DNA of 64,000 nt, from NCBI RefSeq assembly GCF_964204645.1, contig NC_134035.1:9704451-9768450 (forward strand), given 5' to 3'. Below, piece by piece: positions 1 to 16,148 of the stretch (position 1 is the stretch's first letter; each line of letters begins with the position of its first letter). A program made the translations under genes and the position numbers. A model generated the notes under the pieces. It was not told where the DNA came from, made no database searches, and worked only from the letters and a program-made list of their open reading frames with translations. This DNA is from Tubulanus polymorphus. Taxonomy: Eukaryota; Animalia; Nemertea.

Positions 1-840
1 AACCACCAAGTGCAAGAAATGAAGAGGTTAATTGCGAGAAGTTCTGGAGAGAAGTTGAGTTAGAAATGCTATACAGAGGTCATGGTGCACAGAAAGGTAT
101 CCTAGGCCCAGGCTGGTTTGGTTTTATTATCATAATAGTTGCTGAAAGTCTTAATTATACATGTATACTGGTGAATATATTCAGATCACAGAGTAATCCC
201 AACATATGAAGCGTGGAGTCCATGGATTGGAGAGAAAACTAGAAGATCATCGATGTTGATTAACACTGAATATGAGAAATGCTCAGTGGAGGCAGGATTA
301 GAGGGTTCTGAGCCAATTCCTGAGGAAACTATTGAGCATCTTTTGAAGAATGAAAAGGCAAGTAATGTGAAACCTATTCACTATATGCTTCACTCAATTG
401 TAAAAATGAGAATTATGGGAGGTTATCATTTATGATTTATGTACATAAAGCCTACTTGTAACTCTCTATATTTATCCTTCATGCTAAACAGGTCAAGAAT
501 ATTCGTGCATTTTGTCGCAGAGCAAAAGTGGACAGTTAAGGTTCAGCAATGGACATGATACGCCGTCTGAGGGACATATCTAGAGCATCCTTCGACAGTA
601 TTTATGAAGATGTATTTGGACACTCAGGTAATCTAATGTGTTCAGGTGTTCTCAAATTAGTTGACTTCTTCATGTATGTGTTGATTGAAAGCTGCTTCTG
701 ACAAGTTGTTTACAGCGGATAGAAATCCCTTGGTCATTGAGACTTCAAAATAGAAATATCAGCACATATGTCTTCTTAGGTACAGGGGCATTTGCATATC
801 TGCTAAAAAAACTTGCCTTTACCTATTTCATTTTTTTCAG

Positions 841-1400
841 GTGGATGGGCAGTTGGTTGTTGTCCACATGGTGTATCGTATGCGATAAAAAATAATTTTC
901 GAGGTGAAAGTCCGAGGGATTATGTTGACCTGTTAAGAGGCATGAAACATCAGCCAACAATATCGATCTGTGATGTTGCCCATCTTGTGGCAAACTTTGC
1001 AAACTCCCGTTTTGACCAGATGTTTGGCCCAAATGATGGTCGACTGGCTGAAGCTAATGAAGATAATATACGGCGAGCAAAATCACATGAGCTAACTTTC
1101 AAAGCCGAATTTTTGGATGATATCAATAAACCGTATGAAATTTGTGATGATCCAGTTCATCCAGTTAAAAAATCCAATCATCACTATGCTTTATATGACT
1201 GGTTTCATCAGGAAAACTGTAAATCTGAGACAGAAATACTCAGACGTATATCCCTAGTAGATAATATTGCTGGTTTCATTGATTCAGAACGTGATGAACA
1301 GGAGTTCAGTCAACGCAAAAAAGATATCTATTTCTTAAATAAGATGAAACCAGGGACACACATGTTTGTCTTCAGACTTATCACTCATCTGCGTAATGAG
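841..1400 (+). CDS. KDZ transposase catalytic-core region (part of exon 841-2354)
   Basis: GGW..CCPHG..Y..K...RGESPRDYVDLL, H.P.ISICD, YDWFH..N and EQ.FS motifs in ORF 813..2378; polypyrimidine acceptor (ttttttcag) at 840. Confidence 0.8.
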
Positions 1401-1811
1401 TCTATCAATCTAATGCTCAACAAAAAGATGAAAGACCATCTGGGAAGCATTCAGCAGGACCCTATTGGTCGTACAATTCAGGCCCCAAAAGGATCAATGC
1501 AAAAACATGCTGATTGCAATAAAAAAGTAGAAAAATCCACCATCTCAATAACTCGCCGACTGCCAGAACAGAATATTTCATCAAATCAGTCGCGGGTTGA
1601 TGAAGTTTCATTACGGTCTAGATGTTTGTCCTTTATTAATAAACTCACAAATCCAAAAATTCTCAATGCATTCATCGATTTGAACATTAGTGAAATGTGT
1701 GGTGAAGAATTACGTGGAGTACATGACAACCTCCTTTATGCGTCAACGGTTATTGGAAAAACTGCTCCATCGCACAGACATATTGAAGTAAGAGCAAATT
1801 GTGATGGAGTC

Positions 1812-2330
1812 ATGTACATGCAGACTCAAGGGAGTACAAATTATTGTGGTCTGTGTGCTGTCAATAATTTAGTTGGCGCAAGCGCAATCTCGATCAAATA
1901 TATGGATAGTATATCTGATGCTTTGTGGATTGGACAACTGTTGAATCCAGGAATTGGTCCAACATGCCGTATTCTTCCTCCTAGAGATCTGGAGGGATTC
2001 TATAGCATGGATGTAATAGAAGATTGTTTAGAGCGTCTGCACTGTGAAGTCATAAACATTGTGGCTGGCGTTGGTAGTAGTGAATCAGATGAGGAATTGT
2101 TGCTTCTTTTAGAGAGTGCATTTGGAGGTAGCGCTGGTACATGTATAATGTCTCTTCTGATAAAAACTGCACGTAGTGATCATTGGGTTGTTGTAAGGCG
2201 TGGTGCAAGTAAAAGATTTTACCTACTTGACTCAAGGCAAGCTCGGCCTGTTGAATTAAGTAACAGCTATTGTTTAGATTATCTACGAATACAAAGTATC
2301 TCCGGAGCTGTTTATGCTGTGCGATCGCGT
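1812..2330 (+). CDS. Josephin (ataxin-3/JOSD-like) papain-fold deubiquitinase-like domain, in frame with the transposase
   Basis: MYMQTQGSTNYCGLCAVNNL (Cys 1845-1847), GFYSMDVIEDCL, HWVVVRR (His 2181-2183) and FYLLDSRQARP (Asp 2229-2231) parallel the Josephin motifs YHExQ...LCxxHALNN / GNYDVNVIMxAL / HWxxxR / YxLDS.xxP. Confidence 0.75.
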
Positions 2331-2504
2331 CAAACCCATGTACTTTTACAAGATGTGAGTAAGAAATTTTACTTTTGAAGTTATAAAGTTCTATACCTCG
2401 GTATCTTATTTTCACCTCAATTGTCAAATTGAATATGTACATGGAATCTATTTCAGCAGGATCAATCGCCGCCTGACTTGACACCAGTAAGTAACACATC
2501 TTGT

Positions 2505-3466
2505 TCAACTTATGTTATTGTTATATGAATAATCAATTTATTTCGAAAATGAATAATTTTCATTCCAGAATCTTGTCGGCGAAAATAATGAAGAAAATGT
2601 AGTCACTGATATGACATCATCTGAATTAAGAAGTGTAAGTAAACAAATAAATCTTATATGTACGTTGTTCGACTTCTTATATTGTTATATGAATAATCAA
2701 TTTATTTCGAAAATGAATAATTTTCATTCCAGAATCTTGTCGGCGAAAATAATGAAGAAAATGTAGTCACTGATATGACATCATCTGAATTAAGAAGTGT
2801 AAGTAAACAAATAAATCTTATATGTACGTTGTTCGACTTCTTATATTGTTATATGAATAATCAATTTATTTCGAAAATGAATAATTTTCATTCCAGAATC
2901 TTGTCGGCGAAAATAATGAAGAAAATGTAGTCACTGATATGACATCATCTGAATTAAGAAGTGTAAGTAAAAAAATAAATCTTATATGTACGTTGTTCGA
3001 CTTCTTATATTGTTATATGAATAATCAATTTATTTCGAAAATGAATAATTTTCATTCCAGAATCTTGTCGGCGAAAATAATGAAGAAAATGTAGTCACTG
3101 ATATGACATCATTTGAATTAAGAAGTGTAAGTAAACAAATAAATCTTATATGTACGTTGTTCAACTTCTTATATTGTTATATGAATAATCAATTTATTTC
3201 GAAAATGAATAATTTTCATTCCAGAATCTTGGCATCGAAAATAATGAAGAAAATGTAGTCACTGATATGACATCATCTGAAGTAAGAAGTGTAAGTAAAC
3301 AAATAAATCTTATATGTACGTTGTTCAACTTCTTATATTGTTATATGAATAATCAATTTATTTCGAAAATGAATAATTTTCATTCCAGAATCTTGTCGGC
3401 GAAAATAATGAAGAAAATGTAGTCACTGATATGACATCACGCAAAAGATCTTTTCTTGAACAAGCA
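2505..3466 (+). repeat. Tandem array of six 164-bp intron+exon units, each with a 66-nt phase-0 exon (NLVGENNEENVVTDMTSSELRS)
   Basis: Exon starts at 2569, 2733, 2897, 3061, 3225 and 3389, each preceded by ttttcattccag. Units 1-5 are followed by gtaagt; the sixth exon has a different 3' end (to 3466). Only a few substitutions between units. Confidence 0.9.
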
Positions 3467-4056
3467 GTATGTGAGAAAGAATTAATCAACATTAATGAAA
3501 AAATGAAACTTTCAATCTAAAAACTTTCAGATTGTATGTGAACGTTGTTTGTAGCAATCTAAATGAATTTCATACAATTTGACATTCATAAATGAATTTT
3601 ACTAATTAACCTTTTTCCATGCATTTCTGACTATAGAACACCATTCTGGAAAAATGTGCATGCGCATTTTCAATCATCCTCTTAAGAATTGACCTGGTAT
3701 GTCATTGTTTCCAGGTATCTGAAATTGATTTAGAAGTACACCAACAACTTCGAATTAATCCAAAGAAGGTAATTTTAGATTCATTTTCTCCCCATATAAG
3801 TGTGGTTATTAATGGAATGTATGTATGGGATACTGGAAATAAATTTATACCGGTAATTGATTTTCAGGCAAGACAGAGTGTATCATTTGTTTGGGAGTTT
3901 CCAAGACCTCAGGTACTTGGTAGCCACAGATAGAAATTAGATATCAAATCAGTTTCACATTGTATCGCTTTACTAAACATATCATAGAACTAATATCACA
4001 TCATTTGTGTCTCGTTTTAGAAAATATTCTTAGAATGTACATGTACTTAATTTCAG

Positions 4057-4478
4057 AAACGTAGGAGAAGTGCCTTCTTATCTGACCTACCAGCTGATAT
4101 CCAGATATATTGTTTGTGTGAGAAAACAGATACAGGCAGGTAAGCTTTCATATCTATTCAATCAATGCCTTATGGTGAACGTTTGGTCGCATTACCTTCA
4201 TATATGATATCATTCTTATATTTTGTATTTCTTCTAATTTCCTAGATATACTTCCTAAAATGTTTACATAATACTGTTGTCAATACTGTACATAGCATCG
4301 TTTATCTTATAACATATGTGAGAGAATGTTGGATACATAAACCTTTTACTGTAGTTTGTATATTGCTTGTGATGAATGTAAGTGCTGGTTCCATCCACCT
4401 TGTGTCGGAATGAAGGAATTGTCAGAGTTGGAGGCAGAAGCCATAGAATTTGTGTGTGACACATGTCAAAATAAAGAG
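4057..4478 (+). CDS. PHD finger 1 of the KDZ gene (two exons)
   Basis: Spliced 4057-4139 + 4355-4478: IYCLCEKTDTGSLYIACDECKCWFHPPCVGM...FVCDTC (C4HC3). Confidence 0.85.
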
Positions 4479-4782
4479 GTAACTATGTCATCATCAAGAT
4501 GAACTGGATGAAAAACAATATGACACAGTCTTTTCTGATAAATTTCAGATGAAAAATACTGGAACCGTAAGAAATGTAGCTTTGAAGAGGAAATCTCGAA
4601 AACCAAAAGTAAAGGAACTTCTTTTTAATCTTCGCTAAGAAAACATATCCTTTCTGCTATAAGGCATTTGTAAATGTGTATGATTTCATTATGATGTCAT
4701 TGTATTCATCGTTTGAAAAATGTACAGTCTGCATTATAAATATATTTCTAATGGAATTTTTCTTGATAATATTCTTTTAAAG

Positions 4783-5109
4783 GAGTCACGTTTAAAGAGT
4801 ATATCTGAATTACCTCAAGATATGAAAGTATTCTGTTTTTGTAAGAATAAAAGGTAATCTATGCTTTTTGATAAGAAAAATGATATATTTTTACATGTAC
4901 CTGATATTTCATTTACATTTATTGAATTATTATTACCTTCTCATTGCAGTGTTAATGTTATTGTTTGCAATAGCCAGTTTTGTCAATGGGCCATACATCC
5001 TGAATGTATAGGTGTTAAGTCCGAACATCTCGACCTGAATGATATGTATTTTTGTGTGATGTGTTCGATTGGTCAGTTACGGAAAAAATGTCTGGATGCC
5101 CTGAAGAAG
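4783..5109 (+). CDS. PHD finger 2 of the KDZ gene (two exons)
   Basis: Spliced 4783-4853 + 4950-5109: VFCFCKNKSVNVIVCNSQFCQWAIHPECIGV...YFCVMC; intron in a similar position and the same phase as in PHD1. Confidence 0.8.
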
Positions 5110-5291
5110 GTCTTTTTCAATACCAAAAATTAATTTTTGTCAATACCCATACATTTTTGTATTTTCGATAGGCTTATAAGCTATGAGAGGCTTAAATGAT
5201 CAGTTGGCAAATGTATATCATTATTGTTTATAAAGGTTGAAAAAGTAGTCGAGATGAGGTCCCCCTGTCCTTGCTGCTTGACAGATAGAGT

Positions 5292-5533
5292 TGTCGAGAA
5301 CAGGATGTTTATGTAAATATGTCAGTAACCATATAGTGTTCACTCCCCCTTAGCCTATGTAGCGAATCATCATATATTTTAGCATGCGCATGTGCAGTCG
5401 GGACAGGTGGTTAGCCTGTGTGTGACCGAAATAAACGAGTATCTTATGATCTGTAGACTGAACCCGTCGTGTTTTTAGTCTTTCTCTTCTTTTATCTCCG
5501 AACCTGGTCTTCTTTGTGACTCGCAACGCCACA
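5292..5533 (+). repeat. 5' LTR (242 bp)
   Basis: TGTCGAGAAC...AACGCCACA; no differences from the 3' LTR seen by eye. Confidence 0.97.
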
Positions 5534-5534
5534 T

Positions 5535-5552
5535 TGGTGCCGTGACCAGGAT
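5535..5552 (+). promoter_or_regulatory. Primer-binding site complementary to the tRNA-His 3' end
   Basis: TGGTGCCGTGACCAGGAT one base after the LTR; reverse complement of a eukaryotic tRNA-His acceptor end (...TCACGGCACCA). Confidence 0.85.
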
Positions 5553-5559
5553 CAGCCGA

Positions 5560-8500
5560 ATGGAGGATACTCAACTGAACCGGTCGACAATCACACGAAC
5601 TGCAATCAGGCAGAAAGTTGATGATCTCGTCGTGAAATCGTCAACAATCGTCGAAGATTTTCGAACGACCGAAGACGATGTAGATTTACTAAATATCTAC
5701 ATCGAGCAGATCACAGAAAAGTTAAGTCGACTAGAGAAGCTAGACTCGACAATCGAGGACCTAACTCCTTTAACGCATCTTTCAGACACGATTCAAGAAG
5801 CAGAGGACTTCAGATCTAGCGTCATCGAAAAACGCGGCCGAATAATCCGATTTGTAGAAAAGGCGAAGCACACAACGCAACCTCATAATTCTTCGATGAA
5901 CAATTCCGGTGCTTCTGCGACGCCATTTCGCCCGAACAAGGTAAATCTACCTAAACTTACGCTCGCCAAATTCGACGGCGATTTACTCAAATGGCAGGAA
6001 TTCATAGACGGATTCAATTCAGCGGTCAACGACGACTCGAATCTCGACGACGTCGTTAAGTTTCAATACTTACGCGCACAACTTAACGGCGAAGCTTACA
6101 GAACGATCGAGGGTCTGGCCCTCACCGCGTCGAATTATGCGAACGCACTTCAAGTACTGATAAAAAGGTATGGGCAACCGCAAATCATTATCAGTGCATA
6201 TATGCGAGCGTTATGGGAACTTTCGCGACCGACAGAAGACATGCAGAGTCTGATGGAATTTTCGGACAAACTGGAAACATATATCCGAGGACTAAGTGCG
6301 CTCGGAAAAAACGAAGATAGCTACGGAGATTTGTTGACTCCGATTATCTTAGATAAACTGCCTGGGATGATACGACGACAGATAACGAGGGATAATAACG
6401 GCGCGAATTGGAATCTCCAGTCGTTGCGAGATGCCCTTTCGAGAGAGATAACAGCGTTCCAGGCAGGAGTTTCAGTGTACCCAGAAACTGCTCACCTGGG
6501 TACCACGTCAGCGTTCCACGTGGGCAATGCGATCAAGAGAAAACCATTAAAATGTACATTTTGTAAAGGGACACATTTCGCGTCAGATTGTGTTCTTGTA
6601 ACCGAACCAGAGAAACGCCTGGATATCGTTAAACGTGATAAACTTTGTTTTAATTGCATGGGCACTCATCGTTCTCGGGACTGTAAATCCAAGAACACAT
6701 GTAAAAAGTGCAGAGGGAAACATCACACGTTACTATGTGGTTCCTCCCTTACAGAAACGCGCGAGATTTCTACGAAAAATCGACCGCAAAACCCACAAAA
6801 CGGAAGCAGAAGCGATTCTCACGATGTAAAAACTGTTCATCAAACGTATGCCGGCGCCCAACAACCACGACCAGATGGGCCCATACTTCTTAAAACAGCT
6901 GTGGCGGAGATTTTTTCGCCATCAACTTCCGCTAATAACCGCTCGAATGGTCGTAAGATAAACATTTTACTGGACGAAGGCAGCCATAGATCGTTTATCA
7001 CGACGCGAGTTTCTGTCAGCTTAAATCTCCCACATCTGGGCCAAGAGGAAATCAATCTAGCGACGTTCGGAGAACAACTGGCCGGTCGGCGATTACTTCA
7101 AAGAACGAACTTTAACATCGCGTCATCAGAGGGTTCACCGATACTAATTGAAGCCCTCGTGATACCGACCATCTCCACGCCAATCAGCAATCTTGTAAAC
7201 AATAAAGTTTTGGATCTTCCGCATCTGCGAAACCTAACTCTAGCGGAACAGCCATCATCAATAACCGGCGACTTTGATATCGATGTATTAATTGGCGCCG
7301 ATTACTACTGGTCTATAGTCGGCGATAATACCGTGAAGGGCTACGGCCCGACTGCCGTTTCATCACGTATAGGGTATCTCTTATCAGGGCCCATACCGAG
7401 CCACACCTTACTCACCGGAGTAAGGAATTCAACCGTTCTCAACGTATCTTGTGTGAGAAATATGGATCTCAATTCGCACCGCGGAGAGGAAGTCTCATTA
7501 CAATCGTTTTGGGACTTAGAAACGATCGGCATCAAAGATGACGCTTCTTTGATAAAAAACCGTGGACTTGCTTATTCGGACTATATTAAAACCCATCTAA
7601 CTGTTGATAGCGATGGACGCTATACTGCGAAACTACCTTGGAAAGAAAGCCACGCCCCCTTGCCGGACAACAGACACGTGGCCGAAGCACGGACTCGCAG
7701 TATGATACGCCGTTTATCCGCAGAAATGAGAACCGTATACGATGCAATAATTGAAGAACAACTGTCGCGTGATTTCATAGAGGATGTAACACATGACATC
7801 TCCAGTATCGGACACTATTTACCCCACCGAGGAGTAAAAAAGGACTCTACTACCACGCCCCTCAGAATCGTTTTCGACTGCAGTTGTAGAGTCGGAAGCG
7901 AACCGTCGTTGAATGATTGCTTGGAAACTGGACCCCCGCTCCTAAACGATTTGGTATCTATATTGTTGCGATTTCGATTGTACTCTACGGGAATATCCAC
8001 CGATATCGAAAAGGCATTTTTACAAATAAGACTCCACGAACACGATCGGAAGTATACCAAATTCTTGTGGTTAACCGACCCGAATGATCCAGAAAGCGAT
8101 TTCAAAGTACTTCAGTTTAAAAGTATCCTGTTCGGAGCGGTCTCGAGCCCGTTTGTTCTTAATGCCACTGTCAAATCCCACTTAGCCAATTACGATTGCG
8201 AAACCGCGGGGAAATTGGCCGAAAACATATACGTGGATAATATCGTCACTGGAATAACATCTGAGGACAAAGCGATAAACTTTTATGCACAATCAAACGA
8301 AATAATGAATTCTGCAGGCTTGGCCCTCAGAGCGTGGGCAACTAATTGCCAGAGACTGCGTAATTTGGCGAGCTCGGATGGAGTAGCCGAGTCGAAACCC
8401 ATCGCGAACGTCCTCGGGATCCGATGGGACACTCATAACGACACCCTTAGCATTAAGGTAGATGACGGAACGTCCGATCTGGTGACAAAACGTGAGGTAG

Positions 8501-10893
8501 TTAGCGCGGCGTCGAAGTTATATGATCCGCTTGGTTTTCTGGCCCCCGTACAGGTCAGGGCTAAGATGTACATCCAGGAACTCTGGAAACTTAATCTAGG
8601 CTGGGACGACCCAGTACAGGACGAATCAATGCGAGAAAAATGGTTCTCGATTCGGAATGATTTGTCACGTGCGTCAGAAATTGTGTTATCAAGGAAATAC
8701 TTAAGTCAACCGCAAACCCAGAATTATGAAATACACGTGTTTGCTGATAGCAGCAAAGCAGCATTTGGAGCTGTGGTTTATTTACGAAACCAGCATGATA
8801 CATCGTTTGTTATGTCTAAGACACGTGTCGCACCAGTAAAGGAATTAACTATTCCACGACTGGAATTACTTGCTGCTTTGACCGGTTCGAAGCTTATCGA
8901 TTATGTAACTGAATCGCTCGGTTCCGAAATCGCTATAACCAAAAAAGTGCTTTGGAGCGATAGTCAGATTGTGCTTTGTTGGTTGAACTCCGATCGAAAG
9001 TTACCAGTATTCGTCAGCAACCGCGTGAAACAGATTAAATCTATCAAAATTGACGAGTACCGTTACTGCCCGACGTCTGATAATCCGGCAGACATACTGT
9101 CGCGTGGAATCGACTCCGAGAAACTACGGCATTCTAATTTGTGGTGGTTTGGCCCCGAATGGCTGAAACATGGCGACTGGCCCGTGGATAAATTATACGC
9201 TGACACTAGCACAGTTAATATCCTCCACATCAACGATCCTCAACCCGGGCAGGTTGAAGACGCGGAGGACGAACGGATTGGTTTGGTAGAATTAATCGAC
9301 ATTGAACGATTCATAGAGTTAGGATCATTATTACGTGTCACCGCTTACGTTTTCTTGTTTGTCGCGAAACTTCAACGCCAGACAGATCGGTCCGCCGCGG
9401 ATCTGACGCCGAATGATATAGCCCGAGCTAGAACGGCGTGGATTAAAGCTGTGCAAAATGCTAATTATTCGAATGAAATTTTCGTGCTGCAGGGTAATCA
9501 TGCAAAATCGCGAGCGCCCCTGACAAAACAGCTACGGTTGTTTTTTGGCGATGATAGCTTGTTGAGAGTTGGAGGGAGACTCCATAACGCCCCGATTGAT
9601 TATGGCGCGAAATTCCCAATATTACTTCCCCCGAAAGGGCGATTTACCGAGTTAACTGTGATTGATGCTCACGCGAGAGCACTTCATTTGGGTACAGAAT
9701 CAACGATTAACCGTATTCGACAAACGTATTGGATTCAAAGTATCAGGAAAGTCGTTAAATCTCTGTTGCGAAAATGTTACAATTGCAAAATCATTAGTGG
9801 TCAGCCATACCCACTACCGGACCCTGCACCGTTGCAGAAGAGCAGGCTGACAGATGCCCCTCCCTTTACCGTAACGGGAGTGGATTTCACCGGACATTTG
9901 TTCGTGAGAGATAACAACAGAGAAGCGAAAGCGTATATAGTCTTGTTTACATGTGCGAACACACGTGCCGTTCATCTCGAGGTTGTTTCTGATATGTCGT
10001 GTGCCACATTTCTTCTCGCCTTCCGACGTTTCGCCGCACGTCGATCCTTACCTCAAAAGTTGATAAGTGATAACGGATCGGCATTCGTGGCCGCGGTGGG
10101 AGAATTAAAGAAGCTTCTCGATATTCATTCGGTTCGAAAATACATGCTCGAGAAAAATGTTGAATGGGTATTTATACCAAAGGCCGCCCCATGGCATGGT
10201 GGCTTTTGGGAACGTTTAGTTGGACTTACGAAACAAGTTCTGAAACGTGTTTTAGTCCGCGCATACATATCGATGTCTGAACTTATTACGCTCGTCGCGG
10301 AAATCGAAATGGTGATCAACAACCGCCCGCTTACGTATTTGTCCGATGACGTAACTGACCCAGAACCGCTAACACCATCGCACCTCCTTCACGGACGAGT
10401 TATGTCGAATCTACCGCACCTATCTGATACCGATGCTATCAGTGATCCGGAGTATGGTGTTTCGATAAACACACAAAACCTCCAGAAACGCGCACAAAGA
10501 GTGATGGAACTCTTCGAACATTTTCGGTCTCGTTGGACCAACGAATACGTTATTGCGCTACGTGAACGACATCTGTCCATGCGAAATAATGGCAGAACAA
10601 GCGAGATTCGATCAGGAGACGTTGTACTCGTACACGACGACCAAAAACGTAGAATTAACTGGAAGCTCGCGATCGTAACGAAACTGAACTACGGGAACGA
10701 CGGCGCAGTTCGTTCAGCAGAAATTAGAATGGGCACTACAAATACTAGCCGACCTATAAATAAACTGTTCCCGCTTGAAATTAACACCGATATGGACTTT
10801 AAAGAGCCTGGCCCAGTTATAGCCTCCGATCCGCGACCCGTGCGAAACGCAGCGCGAAAGGCTCGTGCAAAAATCGTCGAATGTTTGAAATAG
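5560..10893 (+). CDS. BEL/Pao Gag-Pol polyprotein (DUF1759-type gag, 3 Zn knuckles, aspartic protease, RT, RNase H, integrase)
   Basis: LPKLTLAKFDGD..KWQEF; CTFC..H...C / CFNC..H...C / CKKC..HHTLLC; LLDEGS; YLPH..V, DIEKAFLQI, YVDN; FADSS..AFG, ELTIPRLEL; H..H..C..C, GVDFTG, SDNG, GGFWERLV. First ATG at 5560 within ORF 5542..10893. Confidence 0.97.
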   Translation: MEDTQLNRSTITRTAIRQKVDDLVVKSSTIVEDFRTTEDDVDLLNIYIEQITEKLSRLEKLDSTIEDLTPLTHLSDTIQEAEDFRSSVIEKRGRIIRFVEKAKHTTQPHNSSMNNSGASATPFRPNKVNLPKLTLAKFDGDLLKWQEFIDGFNSAVNDDSNLDDVVKFQYLRAQLNGEAYRTIEGLALTASNYANALQVLIKRYGQPQIIISAYMRALWELSRPTEDMQSLMEFSDKLETYIRGLSALGKNEDSYGDLLTPIILDKLPGMIRRQITRDNNGANWNLQSLRDALSREITAFQAGVSVYPETAHLGTTSAFHVGNAIKRKPLKCTFCKGTHFASDCVLVTEPEKRLDIVKRDKLCFNCMGTHRSRDCKSKNTCKKCRGKHHTLLCGSSLTETREISTKNRPQNPQNGSRSDSHDVKTVHQTYAGAQQPRPDGPILLKTAVAEIFSPSTSANNRSNGRKINILLDEGSHRSFITTRVSVSLNLPHLGQEEINLATFGEQLAGRRLLQRTNFNIASSEGSPILIEALVIPTISTPISNLVNNKVLDLPHLRNLTLAEQPSSITGDFDIDVLIGADYYWSIVGDNTVKGYGPTAVSSRIGYLLSGPIPSHTLLTGVRNSTVLNVSCVRNMDLNSHRGEEVSLQSFWDLETIGIKDDASLIKNRGLAYSDYIKTHLTVDSDGRYTAKLPWKESHAPLPDNRHVAEARTRSMIRRLSAEMRTVYDAIIEEQLSRDFIEDVTHDISSIGHYLPHRGVKKDSTTTPLRIVFDCSCRVGSEPSLNDCLETGPPLLNDLVSILLRFRLYSTGISTDIEKAFLQIRLHEHDRKYTKFLWLTDPNDPESDFKVLQFKSILFGAVSSPFVLNATVKSHLANYDCETAGKLAENIYVDNIVTGITSEDKAINFYAQSNEIMNSAGLALRAWATNCQRLRNLASSDGVAESKPIANVLGIRWDTHNDTLSIKVDDGTSDLVTKREVVSAASKLYDPLGFLAPVQVRAKMYIQELWKLNLGWDDPVQDESMREKWFSIRNDLSRASEIVLSRKYLSQPQTQNYEIHVFADSSKAAFGAVVYLRNQHDTSFVMSKTRVAPVKELTIPRLELLAALTGSKLIDYVTESLGSEIAITKKVLWSDSQIVLCWLNSDRKLPVFVSNRVKQIKSIKIDEYRYCPTSDNPADILSRGIDSEKLRHSNLWWFGPEWLKHGDWPVDKLYADTSTVNILHINDPQPGQVEDAEDERIGLVELIDIERFIELGSLLRVTAYVFLFVAKLQRQTDRSAADLTPNDIARARTAWIKAVQNANYSNEIFVLQGNHAKSRAPLTKQLRLFFGDDSLLRVGGRLHNAPIDYGAKFPILLPPKGRFTELTVIDAHARALHLGTESTINRIRQTYWIQSIRKVVKSLLRKCYNCKIISGQPYPLPDPAPLQKSRLTDAPPFTVTGVDFTGHLFVRDNNREAKAYIVLFTCANTRAVHLEVVSDMSCATFLLAFRRFAARRSLPQKLISDNGSAFVAAVGELKKLLDIHSVRKYMLEKNVEWVFIPKAAPWHGGFWERLVGLTKQVLKRVLVRAYISMSELITLVAEIEMVINNRPLTYLSDDVTDPEPLTPSHLLHGRVMSNLPHLSDTDAISDPEYGVSINTQNLQKRAQRVMELFEHFRSRWTNEYVIALRERHLSMRNNGRTSEIRSGDVVLVHDDQKRRINWKLAIVTKLNYGNDGAVRSAEIRMGTTNTSRPINKLFPLEINTDMDFKEPGPVIASDPRPVRNAARKARAKIVECLK

Positions 10894-11065
10894 TTGCATA
10901 ATAGTTACTATCAATGCCTGAATTTACTATTTAATCGTATTTTGAATTAACGTTTAGTTGTTTATTGATTTCCATAAGCTTTATTTACTTAATCCATTGT
11001 AATGATTAGTCATATATCTCTCCGTTCTTACTCTTTATTTGTTTACCTTTGTCGCCCCGGAGAAA

Positions 11066-11307
11066 TGTCGAGAACAGGATGTTTATGTAAATATGTCAGT
11101 AACCATATAGTGTTCACTCCCCCTTAGCCTATGTAGCGAATCATCATATATTTTAGCATGCGCATGTGCAGTCGGGACAGGTGGTTAGCCTGTGTGTGAC
11201 CGAAATAAACGAGTATCTTATGATCTGTAGACTGAACCCGTCGTGTTTTTAGTCTTTCTCTTCTTTTATCTCCGAACCTGGTCTTCTTTGTGACTCGCAA
11301 CGCCACA
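11066..11307 (+). repeat. 3' LTR (242 bp)
   Basis: Copy of 5292-5533 followed by TSD AGAGT. Confidence 0.97.
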
Positions 11308-13078
11308 AGAGTAAGGTAACTCATAACAAACAATTCAGAATCTATGGCCCTCGATATTCTGTCATTTATTGCTTATGAAATTAAACGTATGATTTCTTTT
11401 TCAGAATTCAAGAATTGAAAGTATGTTTCAGCTGCTCATTGTATGTCAGGGGTGCAGAATGCCCAGATTATGTTAAAGGACGTGTAGTAGATTACGAATA
11501 CCTCATCAGTAATAACTGCCAAAAGGTTTGAATTTAATGTGGTGTCTTTGTATGATATATTTGAGGCCACAATTTCTAAACATACTTAATCCTGGTCTTA
11601 ATGAAATTGCTACCTTTGATATTAATGTACATACAGCTGCAAATATTCTACATGTATACTCAAAGCTTTTGCATGATTAATCTCATTGTGTTGCCAGAAT
11701 TTTCATGCCTTTAAATTTCTTACAGATGAGGGAATTACATGAATACATCCATGGTATCATCAGTGTGGATTTTCATGCGTAAGTTTCTCATTATTTGACA
11801 TCATCATGAATAATTGTACATAAGATCAGAATTGTGAAAATTCAATCTGCATTACATTTTACGGTAACGATATTTTATAAGAATGATGTTATATGCACAA
11901 GTACTTGTGTGTGTATGGTATATCTAAAAATTATCATATCTTTCGTTAATCTTAATTATAGTGATTTAGAAAAGTACTTGCGCGGTGAGCCTTTGTCAGA
12001 TATGCAACATGGAGCTGGTGTAACAAACCCAGACGTTCTTGGATTTATTTTTTCCTTTGTTCGAAGAGGAGTATCAAAGAAACTAAAAGTTCATCCAACG
12101 TAAGCTATATCCCCATCGTACTGTATATGATTTACTGATATCGATATTGCTATCACAATGTAAGTACATGTATGATAAAATAACCACTGAGAATGATCAG
12201 AACTTATGGGTATGGAATTCTTTACAAATTTTGCATAATTTATTTTTGCATCATGAACAAATCGTTGATAAATTTTTGCCCTGATTATTTGTTTCCTTTA
12301 ATTTGCAGTTATTATTTGACATATCCCAAGGTTACCTTACCGATAATGGCTAGTGAAAAAATGTTATCATTGATCCTTAGAGATAGAGTAAGGTATGTGT
12401 ATGTGTACATTCCCCTATGGTGTAATTAGTAATGGCAATGAGAAATAACTAACTGAATCATGTTTATGTGAGTCAGGTGGAGTCGGCTGTAACGTAGATG
12501 AGTGTAATATTGTTAACCTTCTTTCTTTTAGCCCAGAACGTATATCAAAGGCTTTGCAGATGCAAGCTACTGTATTCATAGTATCATCATATTTTGGAAT
12601 TTCACTGGATCTGGGGTATATCATATGCCGAGCTACTACAGGTAAATCTAGCTCTGAGCGCTTCAGAAACCTGAAATATTTTAAATTGGAGGACTTTGGT
12701 GTTAAACCAAGGCAGTCATAAGAACTTGCACTACATAGTAATGCTGAAAAAATGAGTGTTAATATGTAAACATTAATATTTTAGGTTGGTTGATTTTTAG
12801 TTTTAGGATAAAGTATGTAAGTACACATGATAGAGTAAAAGGTAAACTTTAGGAAAGTTTCTTTTGTTTTGGCTAGTTACAGTTTACCCTTTACTTTTAA
12901 CCTTCATAACCTGTGTATTTTATGTATCATACATTCTGCTTAATCTATCCTGCTTTCCTCATAACAAATGCACAAGAATAATATAGTTGGGCTTCTAAGC
13001 TTCTCTTTTTTTACTATTTATTGTAATAAATCTAATATCTAGAAATGGTGATAAATATATGTCGGATGATCAGTACTA

Positions 13079-14837: not shown

Positions 14838-14886
14838 GGGATTTGAACCTAGTAGCAATACTTTGCCTAAAACTGAGCTATTGAAG
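14838..14886 (-). mobile_element. tRNA-derived SINE head remnant
   Basis: On the minus strand: TAGCTCAGTT (A-box-like) ... GGTTCAAATCC (B box); no intact cloverleaf. Confidence 0.4.
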
Positions 14887-15099
14887 CCACCTGTGGCAAG
14901 AGAGGTACTACTCGGTGTCAGTTACCACATCGTGTGGCAGCTACTCGGTGTCAGTTGCTACATGGTGAGTGGATATACTGTTGTAAAACTGAGCTATTGA
15001 AGCCACCTGTGGCAAGAGAGGTACTACTCGGTGTCAGTTACCACATCGTGTGGCAGCTACTCGGTGTCAGTTGCTACATGGTGAGTGGATATACTGTTG
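14869..15099. repeat. Near-perfect 116-bp tandem duplication with internal CTACTCGGTGTCAGTT sub-repeats
   Basis: AAAACTGAGCTATTGAAGCC...GGATATACTGTTG at 14869 and 14985. Confidence 0.9.
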
Positions 15100-16148
15100 A
15101 CCGCGACCGGTGATATCTACATATGAAATGAATTGTTTCCACGCAACTGCAAGCTGAAAGGCGTACATCCCATCAAGGCATCAGTGTCCTGGTGATGACA
15201 GTGGTTCTACTCTTCGAAAGTTTTCTGGTAGGCCCAAACGATTGTACCTTTCTCTGAGAGTCTTGTTCGAATCCATTCAATTTCAATTCAAGCCCTAGTT
15301 AGTTACCTAATCAATCGTTGGTGGTAAGCTTTTTATAATCGGATGGGCTTATACCAACGTTAGGGATGACAAGGACCAAAACTCGGTTGAAAAAAGTAAC
15401 ACTTAAAAAATATACTTTCTATTCACTTCAGTTCACAATTAATGGCTTAATTCACAAACTTACACAGGTACCTTTCGAAATAATCCAATTCTATGTATGT
15501 TTCGAGTGGTTAATCAACATTATTTTGAGAAATTAATTAATTTCTCCACCAATTTCGCCATTGGCCGCCATTTCTCTGTATTGCACATGTGGCATGATAA
15601 GACAAGTGGACCTACAAGGATTTATATAAATCTTCCAGGACGAAACGACAATTTTTATTTTTGATGGTTTTCCAACTTATATTTCAAATCTTCGTGTTTT
15701 CCATAATGAAATGATAAATTCTGGTAAAAGAAAAATGTGAATAAGTGTTGATTTCTTAATTTTTTTCAATTTCGTCGTTTCGCTTCGTTAGTTTGTGCTG
15801 TTGTCCTGGCCTCAGTCCACAGGTGCCAGCACCTCCAGTAATTTTCAAAATGGCAGCTGTTGACCAGACGGAAATTTACTCTCACTTTACGGCCGATTTG
15901 CACATGGATTAAGATCGTCAGGTGAGGTGTTATAGGTATCAGACAAACTACGAATCTGTTGTGCGTCGATTACAACAAAAATTAGACGGATATCTTAAGA
16001 GACAATGAAATGCCAGGCAAATTACTCGTCAGTCAAATTGGCTGACGAAGATTTCATACAAAAATGACCTTCCCATTCCTGACTGTGGTTTGTGAAAATA
16101 TCCGATCGTGAAACTAAACCACAGACAGGTTACTGACTATTCAAGCCC

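Follow-up and report, generated by a model that had tools for sequence, protein, structure and literature searches.

We analysed a 64,000-nucleotide stretch of the genome of the nemertean Tubulanus polymorphus (contig NC_134035.1, positions 9,704,451 to 9,768,450 of the forward strand), below called the window. A Zisupton-like (KDZ-clan) cut-and-paste DNA transposon has very probably inserted here: the first 15,099 nucleotides form the right-hand three-quarters of its 21.4 kb. The insertion carries one large multi-exon gene which encodes, in this order, zinc fingers, a CxC4 cluster, a DDE transposase core with a SAP-like insert, a Josephin domain, a linker, two PHD fingers and a tail. This copy is inactive as a source of transposase. 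The 5' third of the gene lies outside the window: exon 1, the zinc fingers, CxC4 and the first catalytic Asp were found up to 5.3 kb upstream, in the 15 kb of upstream sequence that was examined (positions there are given as negative numbers). Thus the window, where a preliminary description made from its letters placed the whole architecture in the interval 1-12103, contains no more than two-thirds of the gene, at the 3' side.

Limits of the element and its copies in the genome

The element extends from -6335 to 15099 (21,435 bp). The same 8-bp target-site duplication, ACCGCGAC, is observed at both ends: at -6343 to -6336, before the left terminus GAGTTACATATGAAC, and at 15100-15107, directly after the right terminus. 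The right end (14868-15107) contains two copies of a 116-bp sub-terminal repeat with the inverted motif CATGTAGCARCTGACACCGAGTAGCT, and a 33-bp sub-terminal motif is inverted between the two ends of the element at 94% identity. An 853-bp direct repeat (-6137 to -5289 and 15294-16139) was also considered as the ends of the element and was rejected as an unrelated high-copy miniature inverted-repeat transposable element (MITE).

Two sister copies of about 16 kb each are located on different chromosomes, at C4:1319422-1335792 and C6:16120132-16136035. They are 99.825% identical across a unique interior of 9.7 kb. Their homology ends abruptly, and the flanks are differing 8-bp direct repeats, CGCTATAC for C4 and ATCCATAT for C6, so that 8-bp target-site duplications and inverted termini are present at all three insertions. 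The ends of the sister copies consist of inverted repeats of about 240 bp (83% identity) and kilobase-scale arrays, likewise inverted, in which a 59-bp unit is repeated an unequal number of times in C4 and C6. The left terminus of the sister family, GAGTTGCATATGAGC, is similar to that of the window element. No stops were seen in those exons of the C4 and C6 copies that were matched by similarity. As the two copies are 99.8% identical at different sites, the family itself is or was very recently mobile. These near-identical, apparently intact copies are candidates for direct mobility tests.

A third lineage is represented by a copy on C1, for which no termini were found within 30 kb. The three lineages of this genome are about 50% identical at the protein level and have one domain order in common, which in the C4 copy reads zinc fingers, CxC4, core with a SAP-like motif, Josephin, PHD1, PHD2 and tail. 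By tblastx the window element is collinear with the C4 and C1 copies from exon 1 through the last tail exon. No nucleotide similarity was found between the window element and these two copies. The sole close DNA relative of the window lineage in the genome is a degraded remnant on C10 (83% identity).

The tandem-repeat search also identified an array of 91 copies of a 33-bp unit at -4997 to -1945. It was first read as a terminal array like those of C4 and C6, and this was ruled out by its position inside intron 1, downstream of exon 1. The unit of the array and the sub-terminal inverted motif have a common core, GTAGCTGACACC, and therefore the array may be an amplified transposase-binding site.

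The window copy is dead as a transposase source. An 846-bp MITE-like element (-6137 to -5290) splits codon 5/6 of exon 1, and there is an in-frame TAA in the SAP-like exon (positions 537-539), where the C4 copy has Lys (AAG) and the C1 copy has Met. The MITE is non-autonomous, with termini CTAGTTAGTTACC / GGTTACTGACTA, and a second copy is found in the window at 15294-16139. The 8-bp duplications of the MITE are TTCAAGCC and CTTTTTAC, the latter flanking the insertion in exon 1. At least 40 copies with 96-98% identity are present in the genome; 1643 candidates were counted on first look.

Another insertion separates the PHD fingers from the tail. A BEL/Pao long terminal repeat (LTR) retrotransposon occupies 5292-11307 on the + strand (5287-11312 with its duplications). 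Its 242-bp LTRs are 100% identical, the 5-bp duplication AGAGT is found at 5287-5291 and 11308-11312, and a single open gag-pol frame of 1783 amino acids (5542-10893) contains the Pfam domains Peptidase_A17 (E 3e-47), DUF1759, RVT_1, rve and DUF5641. This is a very recent insertion into the intron after PHD2, unrelated to the transposase gene. The preliminary description had joined all pieces into one continuous, phase-consistent frame. Such a frame does not exist in this copy: it is interrupted by the TAA, and about 6 kb of the span (5292-11307) belongs to the unrelated retrotransposon.

Exons and domains of the transposase gene

The central feature of the gene is a single open exon on the + strand, 807-2375, which encodes 523 amino acids in one stop-free frame and contains both the C-terminal half of the DDE core and the Josephin domain. 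Its first approximately 220 residues correspond to the C-terminal half of the core of long proteins with the KDZ-associated CxC4 cluster; residues 10-220 are 36-48% identical to an internal block of predicted proteins of 1,000-1,600 amino acids, about 700 residues from their N-terminus. The Josephin domain (about 1707-2360) follows in the same exon, at residues ~300-520, that is, the last ~200 residues. Core and Josephin are encoded by one uninterrupted exon in the window and in the C4, C6 and C1 copies, and by one open reading frame of 674 amino acids on a metagenome contig.

The Josephin domain scores 38.1 bits with the Pfam family PF02099 (cut-off 26). When a profile of 13 Josephin sequences was compared with PDB, the only matches were ATXN3L, ATXN3 and JOSD2. 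The AlphaFold2 (AF2) model of the domain has a predicted local distance difference test score (pLDDT) of 89.8, and the first ten Foldseek matches of this model are all Josephin structures (3o65, 1yzb, 2dos, 9f5t, 9fpa), with E from 1.9e-8 to 1.5e-4. Across the 13 aligned sequences there is no variation at Gln (1827-1829), Cys (1845-1847), His (2181-2183) or Asp (2229-2231), alignment positions Q41, C47, H159 and D175, nor in the NN motif that follows the Cys. Three proposals of the preliminary description are confirmed by these data: that core and Josephin-like domain share an exon, that the region 1812-2330 has a Josephin fold, and that Gln, Cys, His and Asp (codons starting at 1827, 1845, 2181 and 2229) occur in this order.

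Two ordinary multi-exon Josephin genes were observed elsewhere in the genome, at C1:4270031-4270823 and C4:27131877-27133938. Their Pfam scores (69 and 41 bits) are above those of the transposon copies, and they are presumably host genes of the JOSD or ATXN3 type.

Upstream of the central exon, the gene starts with a zinc-finger segment in exon 1 (-5310 to -5050), followed by an exon of 399 amino acids with C2H2/C2HC-like fingers (-1897 to -701), the CxC4 exon (-560 to -396; PF18717, 30.6 bits, cut-off 26.9) and an exon with the first conserved Asp in the motif ILIWDTFRE (-317 to -63). The next exon of the core spans the border of the window (approximately -9 to 98, of which 1-98 are inside, + strand). 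Its end carries the conserved VN.E.FW; it is collinear with C4 and C1 by tblastx and is matched by tblastn of the relatives P0013 and P0019. The core exon at 175-357 (+) is 62-67% identical to C4 and C1 at the amino acid level and contains the motif WSPWIG..TR...NTEYEK, invariant in the core alignment. The candidate catalytic residues of the window copy are the Asp upstream of the window, a second Asp at 972-974 and a Glu at 1296-1298. They are invariant or nearly so in the core alignment (columns D37, D234, E341).

The SAP-like exon (489-629, +) was aligned with the C4 and C1 copies. At the position of the SAP-like helix pair of the preliminary description, the relative P0032 has a PF02037 match of 28.5 bits, and the structural neighbours of the SAP-like insert of the core include SAP domains (Z 4-6). 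However, the score of the C4 copy (14.3 bits) is below the cut-off of 23.9, and in the window the exon is broken by the TAA.

Downstream of the central exon lies a minisatellite (2501-3439, +; 5.7 copies of a 164-bp unit by Tandem Repeats Finder). Each unit contains a phase-preserving mini-exon of 66 nt, NLVGENNEENVVTDMTSSELRS, with AG/GTAAGT splice sites. Nothing corresponding to it is present in C4 or C1. The acidic repeats that had been listed as a feature of the protein are these mini-exons of an exonised minisatellite, and do not occur in the sister copies. A database gene model of 838 amino acids, P0001, uses several of them. It starts at the ATG at 549, just past the TAA, ends with the stop at 5131-5133, and between 549 and 5133 has essentially the splice pattern of the preliminary description.

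The first PHD finger (4051-4478, +; exons 4051-4137 and 4347-4478) is of the BPTF/DIDO1/TAF3 kind and is kept in C4 and C1. In P0001 it scores 33.6 bits with Pfam PF00628 (cut-off 24). It matches the PHD fingers of BPTF, DIDO1, TAF3 and PHF2 with E from 1e-8 to 8e-11 (7.9e-11 for the BPTF finger in PDB). In the printed alignment it retains three of the four positions that we take to form the cage of BPTF. PHD1 resembles readers of histone H3 trimethylated at lysine 4 (H3K4me3). The second finger (4783-5133, +; exons 4783-4851 and 4945-5133) is a divergent C4HC3 domain. Its pattern VIVCN..C.WAIHPEC..C..C is kept in C4 and C1, but its Pfam score (15 bits) is under the cut-off and its similarity to BPTF is weaker (E 4e-4). 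It does not have the aromatic residues at what we take to be the cage positions of BPTF. So, of the two C4HC3 fingers proposed earlier, the first is supported by both Pfam and pattern, and the second by pattern but not by Pfam.

Three blocks beyond the retrotransposon, all on the + strand, are conserved at the protein level in the sister copies, and therefore the gene continues past this insertion. The first, 11418-11528, contains a CxxC motif and is kept in C1 (tblastx); the CxxC frame of C4 was aligned by eye. The second, 11960-12103, contains EKYLRG.PLS..HG and is 39-44% identical to C4 and C1. Neither belongs to a Pfam family. The third, 12527-12721, contains ICRATTG...FKLED.G..PR and is 47-52% identical to C4 and C1. 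In all three lineages the stop codon follows the shared PR motif after 2-5 codons, and 12527-12721 is likely the true C-terminus of the gene. From the CxCC...CxxC tail of the preliminary description, the CxCC piece before 5292 is not conserved, whereas the CxxC exon and the exon 11960-12103 are conserved; the last exon had been missed.

Family placement and the protease after the core

The Zisupton superfamily reportedly goes back to Bohne et al. in 2012, and the KDZ group to Iyer et al. in 2014. The Pfam KDZ model, PF18758, has no match to the loci described here or to 28 long relatives, and matches other elements of the same genome. When the core of the family was compared by hhalign with PF18758-positive proteins, a link was obtained with E 5.4e-5 and probability 66% over 169 columns (a shallower comparison gave E 0.012). 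The motifs CPHGIVY and NsQxAEQ are paired in it with PCGIVV and NTESCEQ, respectively. A protein atlas gave a weak match (0.75) to a cluster with KDZ, Ulp1 and CxC1. The element family is probably a divergent member of the Zisupton branch of KDZ. We place it there because of the profile link to PF18758, the CxC4 and CxC7 clusters, the 8-bp duplication, which is also the length of the Zisupton target-site duplication (PMC12730594), and the accessory SAP, Ulp1 and F-box domains.

At least ten loci of the genome carry a different KDZ lineage, seemingly unrelated, which PF18758 does recognize (e.g. C10:8771202-8771681, C2:16478382-16478861 and C4:17723286-17723828). Its nearest named relative comes from the octocoral Paramuricea clavata.

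The relatives of the element were scanned with Pfam, using 76 representatives of at least 400 amino acids each. CxC4 was found in 24 of them, SAP in 15, Ulp1/C48 in 13, Josephin in 10, PHD in seven and USP/UCH in four; CxC7 (E 7e-18) and F-box were found in two each, and OTU in one. The position after the core is occupied by Ulp1/C48 (13 relatives), Josephin (10), USP/UCH (four) or OTU (one). The Josephin matches come from 10 of the 48 shorter relatives, with best E 1.2e-15. Two proteases are present in P0023 (1584 amino acids; USP/UCH and Ulp1) and in P0136 (779 amino acids; Josephin and Ulp1).

In a quick maximum-likelihood tree of the core, seven of the nine Josephin-bearing rows form one clade (Shimodaira-Hasegawa-like approximate likelihood ratio test support 95). 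The three copies of this genome form a group with 100% support, and the Ulp1-bearing rows are elsewhere. Among the Josephin-bearing relatives, those with a named source are from Sinanodonta, Crassostrea, Mytilus and Lineus. One locus of the bivalve Sinanodonta contains a core, a Josephin domain and a PHD-like exon. These relatives are labelled either 'ubiquitinyl hydrolase 1' or uncharacterized. This creates an annotation risk, as transposon genes of bivalves and a nemertean under such names, or called 'uncharacterized protein', may pass for host deubiquitinases.

Taken together, the Pfam matches, the fold, the target-site duplications and the relatives uphold the core proposal of the preliminary description, namely a KDZ/Zisupton-type lineage with a ubiquitin-type Josephin domain in place of a SUMO protease, coupled to PHD readers.

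Possible function, rival explanations and known systems

Presumably, the repeated sub-terminal motifs are the binding sites of the transposase, which would act by cut-and-paste with an 8-bp stagger. Given its intact catalytic residues and its position, where the relatives have other ubiquitin or SUMO proteases, the most likely activity of the Josephin domain is the removal of ubiquitin or a related modifier. By analogy, it would take the role that the Ulp1 SUMO protease has in other Zisuptons. It could act on the transposase, on the transposition complex, or on nucleosomes and chromatin near the site of action. Target choice, anti-silencing and stabilisation of the transposase had been suggested in the preliminary description as possible roles. 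The PHD fingers and SAP might tether the enzyme to chromatin, and PHD1 could direct the protein to active chromatin.

A broader hypothesis, which we put forward tentatively and consider possible rather than probable, is that Zisupton-like transposases have an exchangeable slot for a modifier protease after the DDE core. This slot, directly behind the core, may be filled in different lineages by Ulp1, USP, OTU or Josephin, sometimes by two of them, all of which would take ubiquitin or SUMO off the same substrate as a step that transposition requires. The protein with Josephin and PHD would then be a self-targeting chromatin deubiquitinase. If so, candidates for the common substrate would be the transposase and, at the donor or target site, chromatin or repair factors; PHD1 would read H3K4me3-type marks, SAP would bind DNA and Josephin would clear ubiquitin locally. 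This would be an undescribed route by which a DNA transposon chooses open chromatin or evades ubiquitin-dependent silencing or degradation.

A number of observations weigh against reading the locus as a Zisupton-like transposon with a chromatin-directed protease. The AF2 model of the core, made from an 11-sequence alignment, is poor (pLDDT 57.7), and the matches in the structure-neighbour search of this model are confined to the SAP-like helical insert (Z 4-7). The KDZ model of Pfam does not recognize the family, and the hhalign link is moderate at its probability of 66%. Hence the structural model does not recover the KDZ/RNase H fold that was expected for the core. The splice sites are predicted from conservation and from the gene model P0001, the exons having been searched singly. 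The outermost 19 bp of the two ends of the window copy pair poorly. Finally, the large exon is open and retains all catalytic residues despite the upstream stop, which points either to recent death or to the use of a truncated product.

The latter possibility can be extended to the assumption that the locus is, or became, a host gene: P0001, translated from its internal start, would be a chromatin-bound deubiquitinase consisting of a partial core, Josephin, the repeats and two PHD fingers. Indeed, P0001 begins at the first ATG after the TAA, every conserved catalytic residue of the 523-aa exon is retained in an open frame, and the minisatellite mini-exons preserve the reading phase. However, the locus lies within a duplication-flanked element with inverted ends, its frame is broken by the MITE and by the TAA, and the sister copies look mobile. 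The only close DNA relative is the degraded 83% remnant on C10. The stop of P0001 at 5133 is due solely to a young retrotransposon inserted before three conserved tail exons, and an open frame is expected anyway if the inactivation is recent. We thus regard a host gene as very unlikely. The termini, the 8-bp duplications and the multi-copy relatives are those of a transposon rather than of a single-copy host gene, in line with the preliminary description. An artefactual fusion, with an unrelated Josephin gene adjacent to the core or a mis-joined prediction, could be suspected since the models of most relatives in the database are short and fragmentary (430-740 amino acids). It is refuted by the continuity of core and Josephin within one exon at four loci and within the metagenome open reading frame, the two ordinary host Josephin genes being located elsewhere, and we give it practically no weight.

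Another explanation concerns the activity of the domain. It might be a pseudo-protease or a ubiquitin-binding module, or it might cleave a non-ubiquitin target, as some bacterial Josephin-like enzymes do, and then the element would not be deubiquitinating. The identity to ataxin-3 is about 19%, the TM-scores are 0.55-0.66, and BpJOS, a bacterial 'ubiquitin C-terminal clippase', is among the structural neighbours. The spacing between Gln and Cys is one residue longer than what we take to be that of ataxin-3, which also counts in favour of this explanation. On the other hand, Gln, Cys, His, Asp and the NN motif are invariant in all 13 sequences, and the relatives have bona fide deubiquitinases (USP, OTU) at the same position, arguing for a catalytic, ubiquitin-directed role. 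We therefore consider it unlikely that the domain is inactive towards ubiquitin.

The transposon interpretation relates the locus to several known systems. With ATXN3, ATXN3L and JOSD1-2 the domain shares its fold (3o65 is matched by Foldseek with E 1.9e-8), its Pfam family and the order of Gln, Cys and His followed by Asp or Asn. The differences are the low identity to ataxin-3 and its kin (about 19%) and the context: the transposon domain has neither ubiquitin-interacting motifs nor a polyglutamine tail and is embedded in a transposase.

KI-MULEs, which are Mutator-like elements (MULEs), carry an Ulp1-like protease, usually as a captured separate gene and not as an in-frame domain. They resemble the element described here in being DNA transposons with a protease for a ubiquitin-like modifier, and differ in the transposase superfamily and in the member of the protease clan. 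More generally, proteases of the ubiquitin-like kind are found repeatedly in transposons (Ulp1 in both Zisupton and MULEs, Josephin-like in Dualen). The present family offers a natural experiment, as one transposase backbone has four protease families at the same position, joined here to chromatin readers.

The literature search found no report of a Josephin-like protease in any DNA transposon, nor of its combination with two PHD fingers (the search covered publications; Repbase, Dfam and InterPro were outside its scope). Within the literature available to the search, the only mobile elements described with a Josephin-like protease are Dualen and, weakly, one element of Chara. The Dualen/RandI non-LTR retrotransposons are reported to encode a Josephin-related cysteine protease (Kojima & Fujiwara 2005, cited in bioRxiv 10.1101/2021.04.23.441226, PMC9977147), and a Penelope-like element of Chara has a weak Josephin motif (bioRxiv 10.1101/2021.04.23.441226; PMC9977147). 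Compared by description, Dualen/RandI are like the present element in being mobile elements with a Josephin-type protease in the main polyprotein. Dualen/RandI and the Chara element are retroelements of algae and protists, whereas the present element is an animal DDE cut-and-paste transposon whose protease is paired with PHD fingers.

A further close system is Zisupton itself. The common features are the 8-bp duplications, the terminal inverted repeats, and a CxC cluster, CxC4 in this element and CxC7 in two relatives, N-terminal to the DDE core. Relatives of the element also have SAP, Ulp1 and F-box domains, and, like Zisupton, it is large, present in low copy number and built around one long multi-exon gene. 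Unlike Zisupton, it has Josephin instead of Ulp1 after the core, followed by two PHD fingers and a conserved tail; its core is too divergent for the Pfam KDZ model, and the termini of its sister family carry kilobase-scale inverted tandem arrays.

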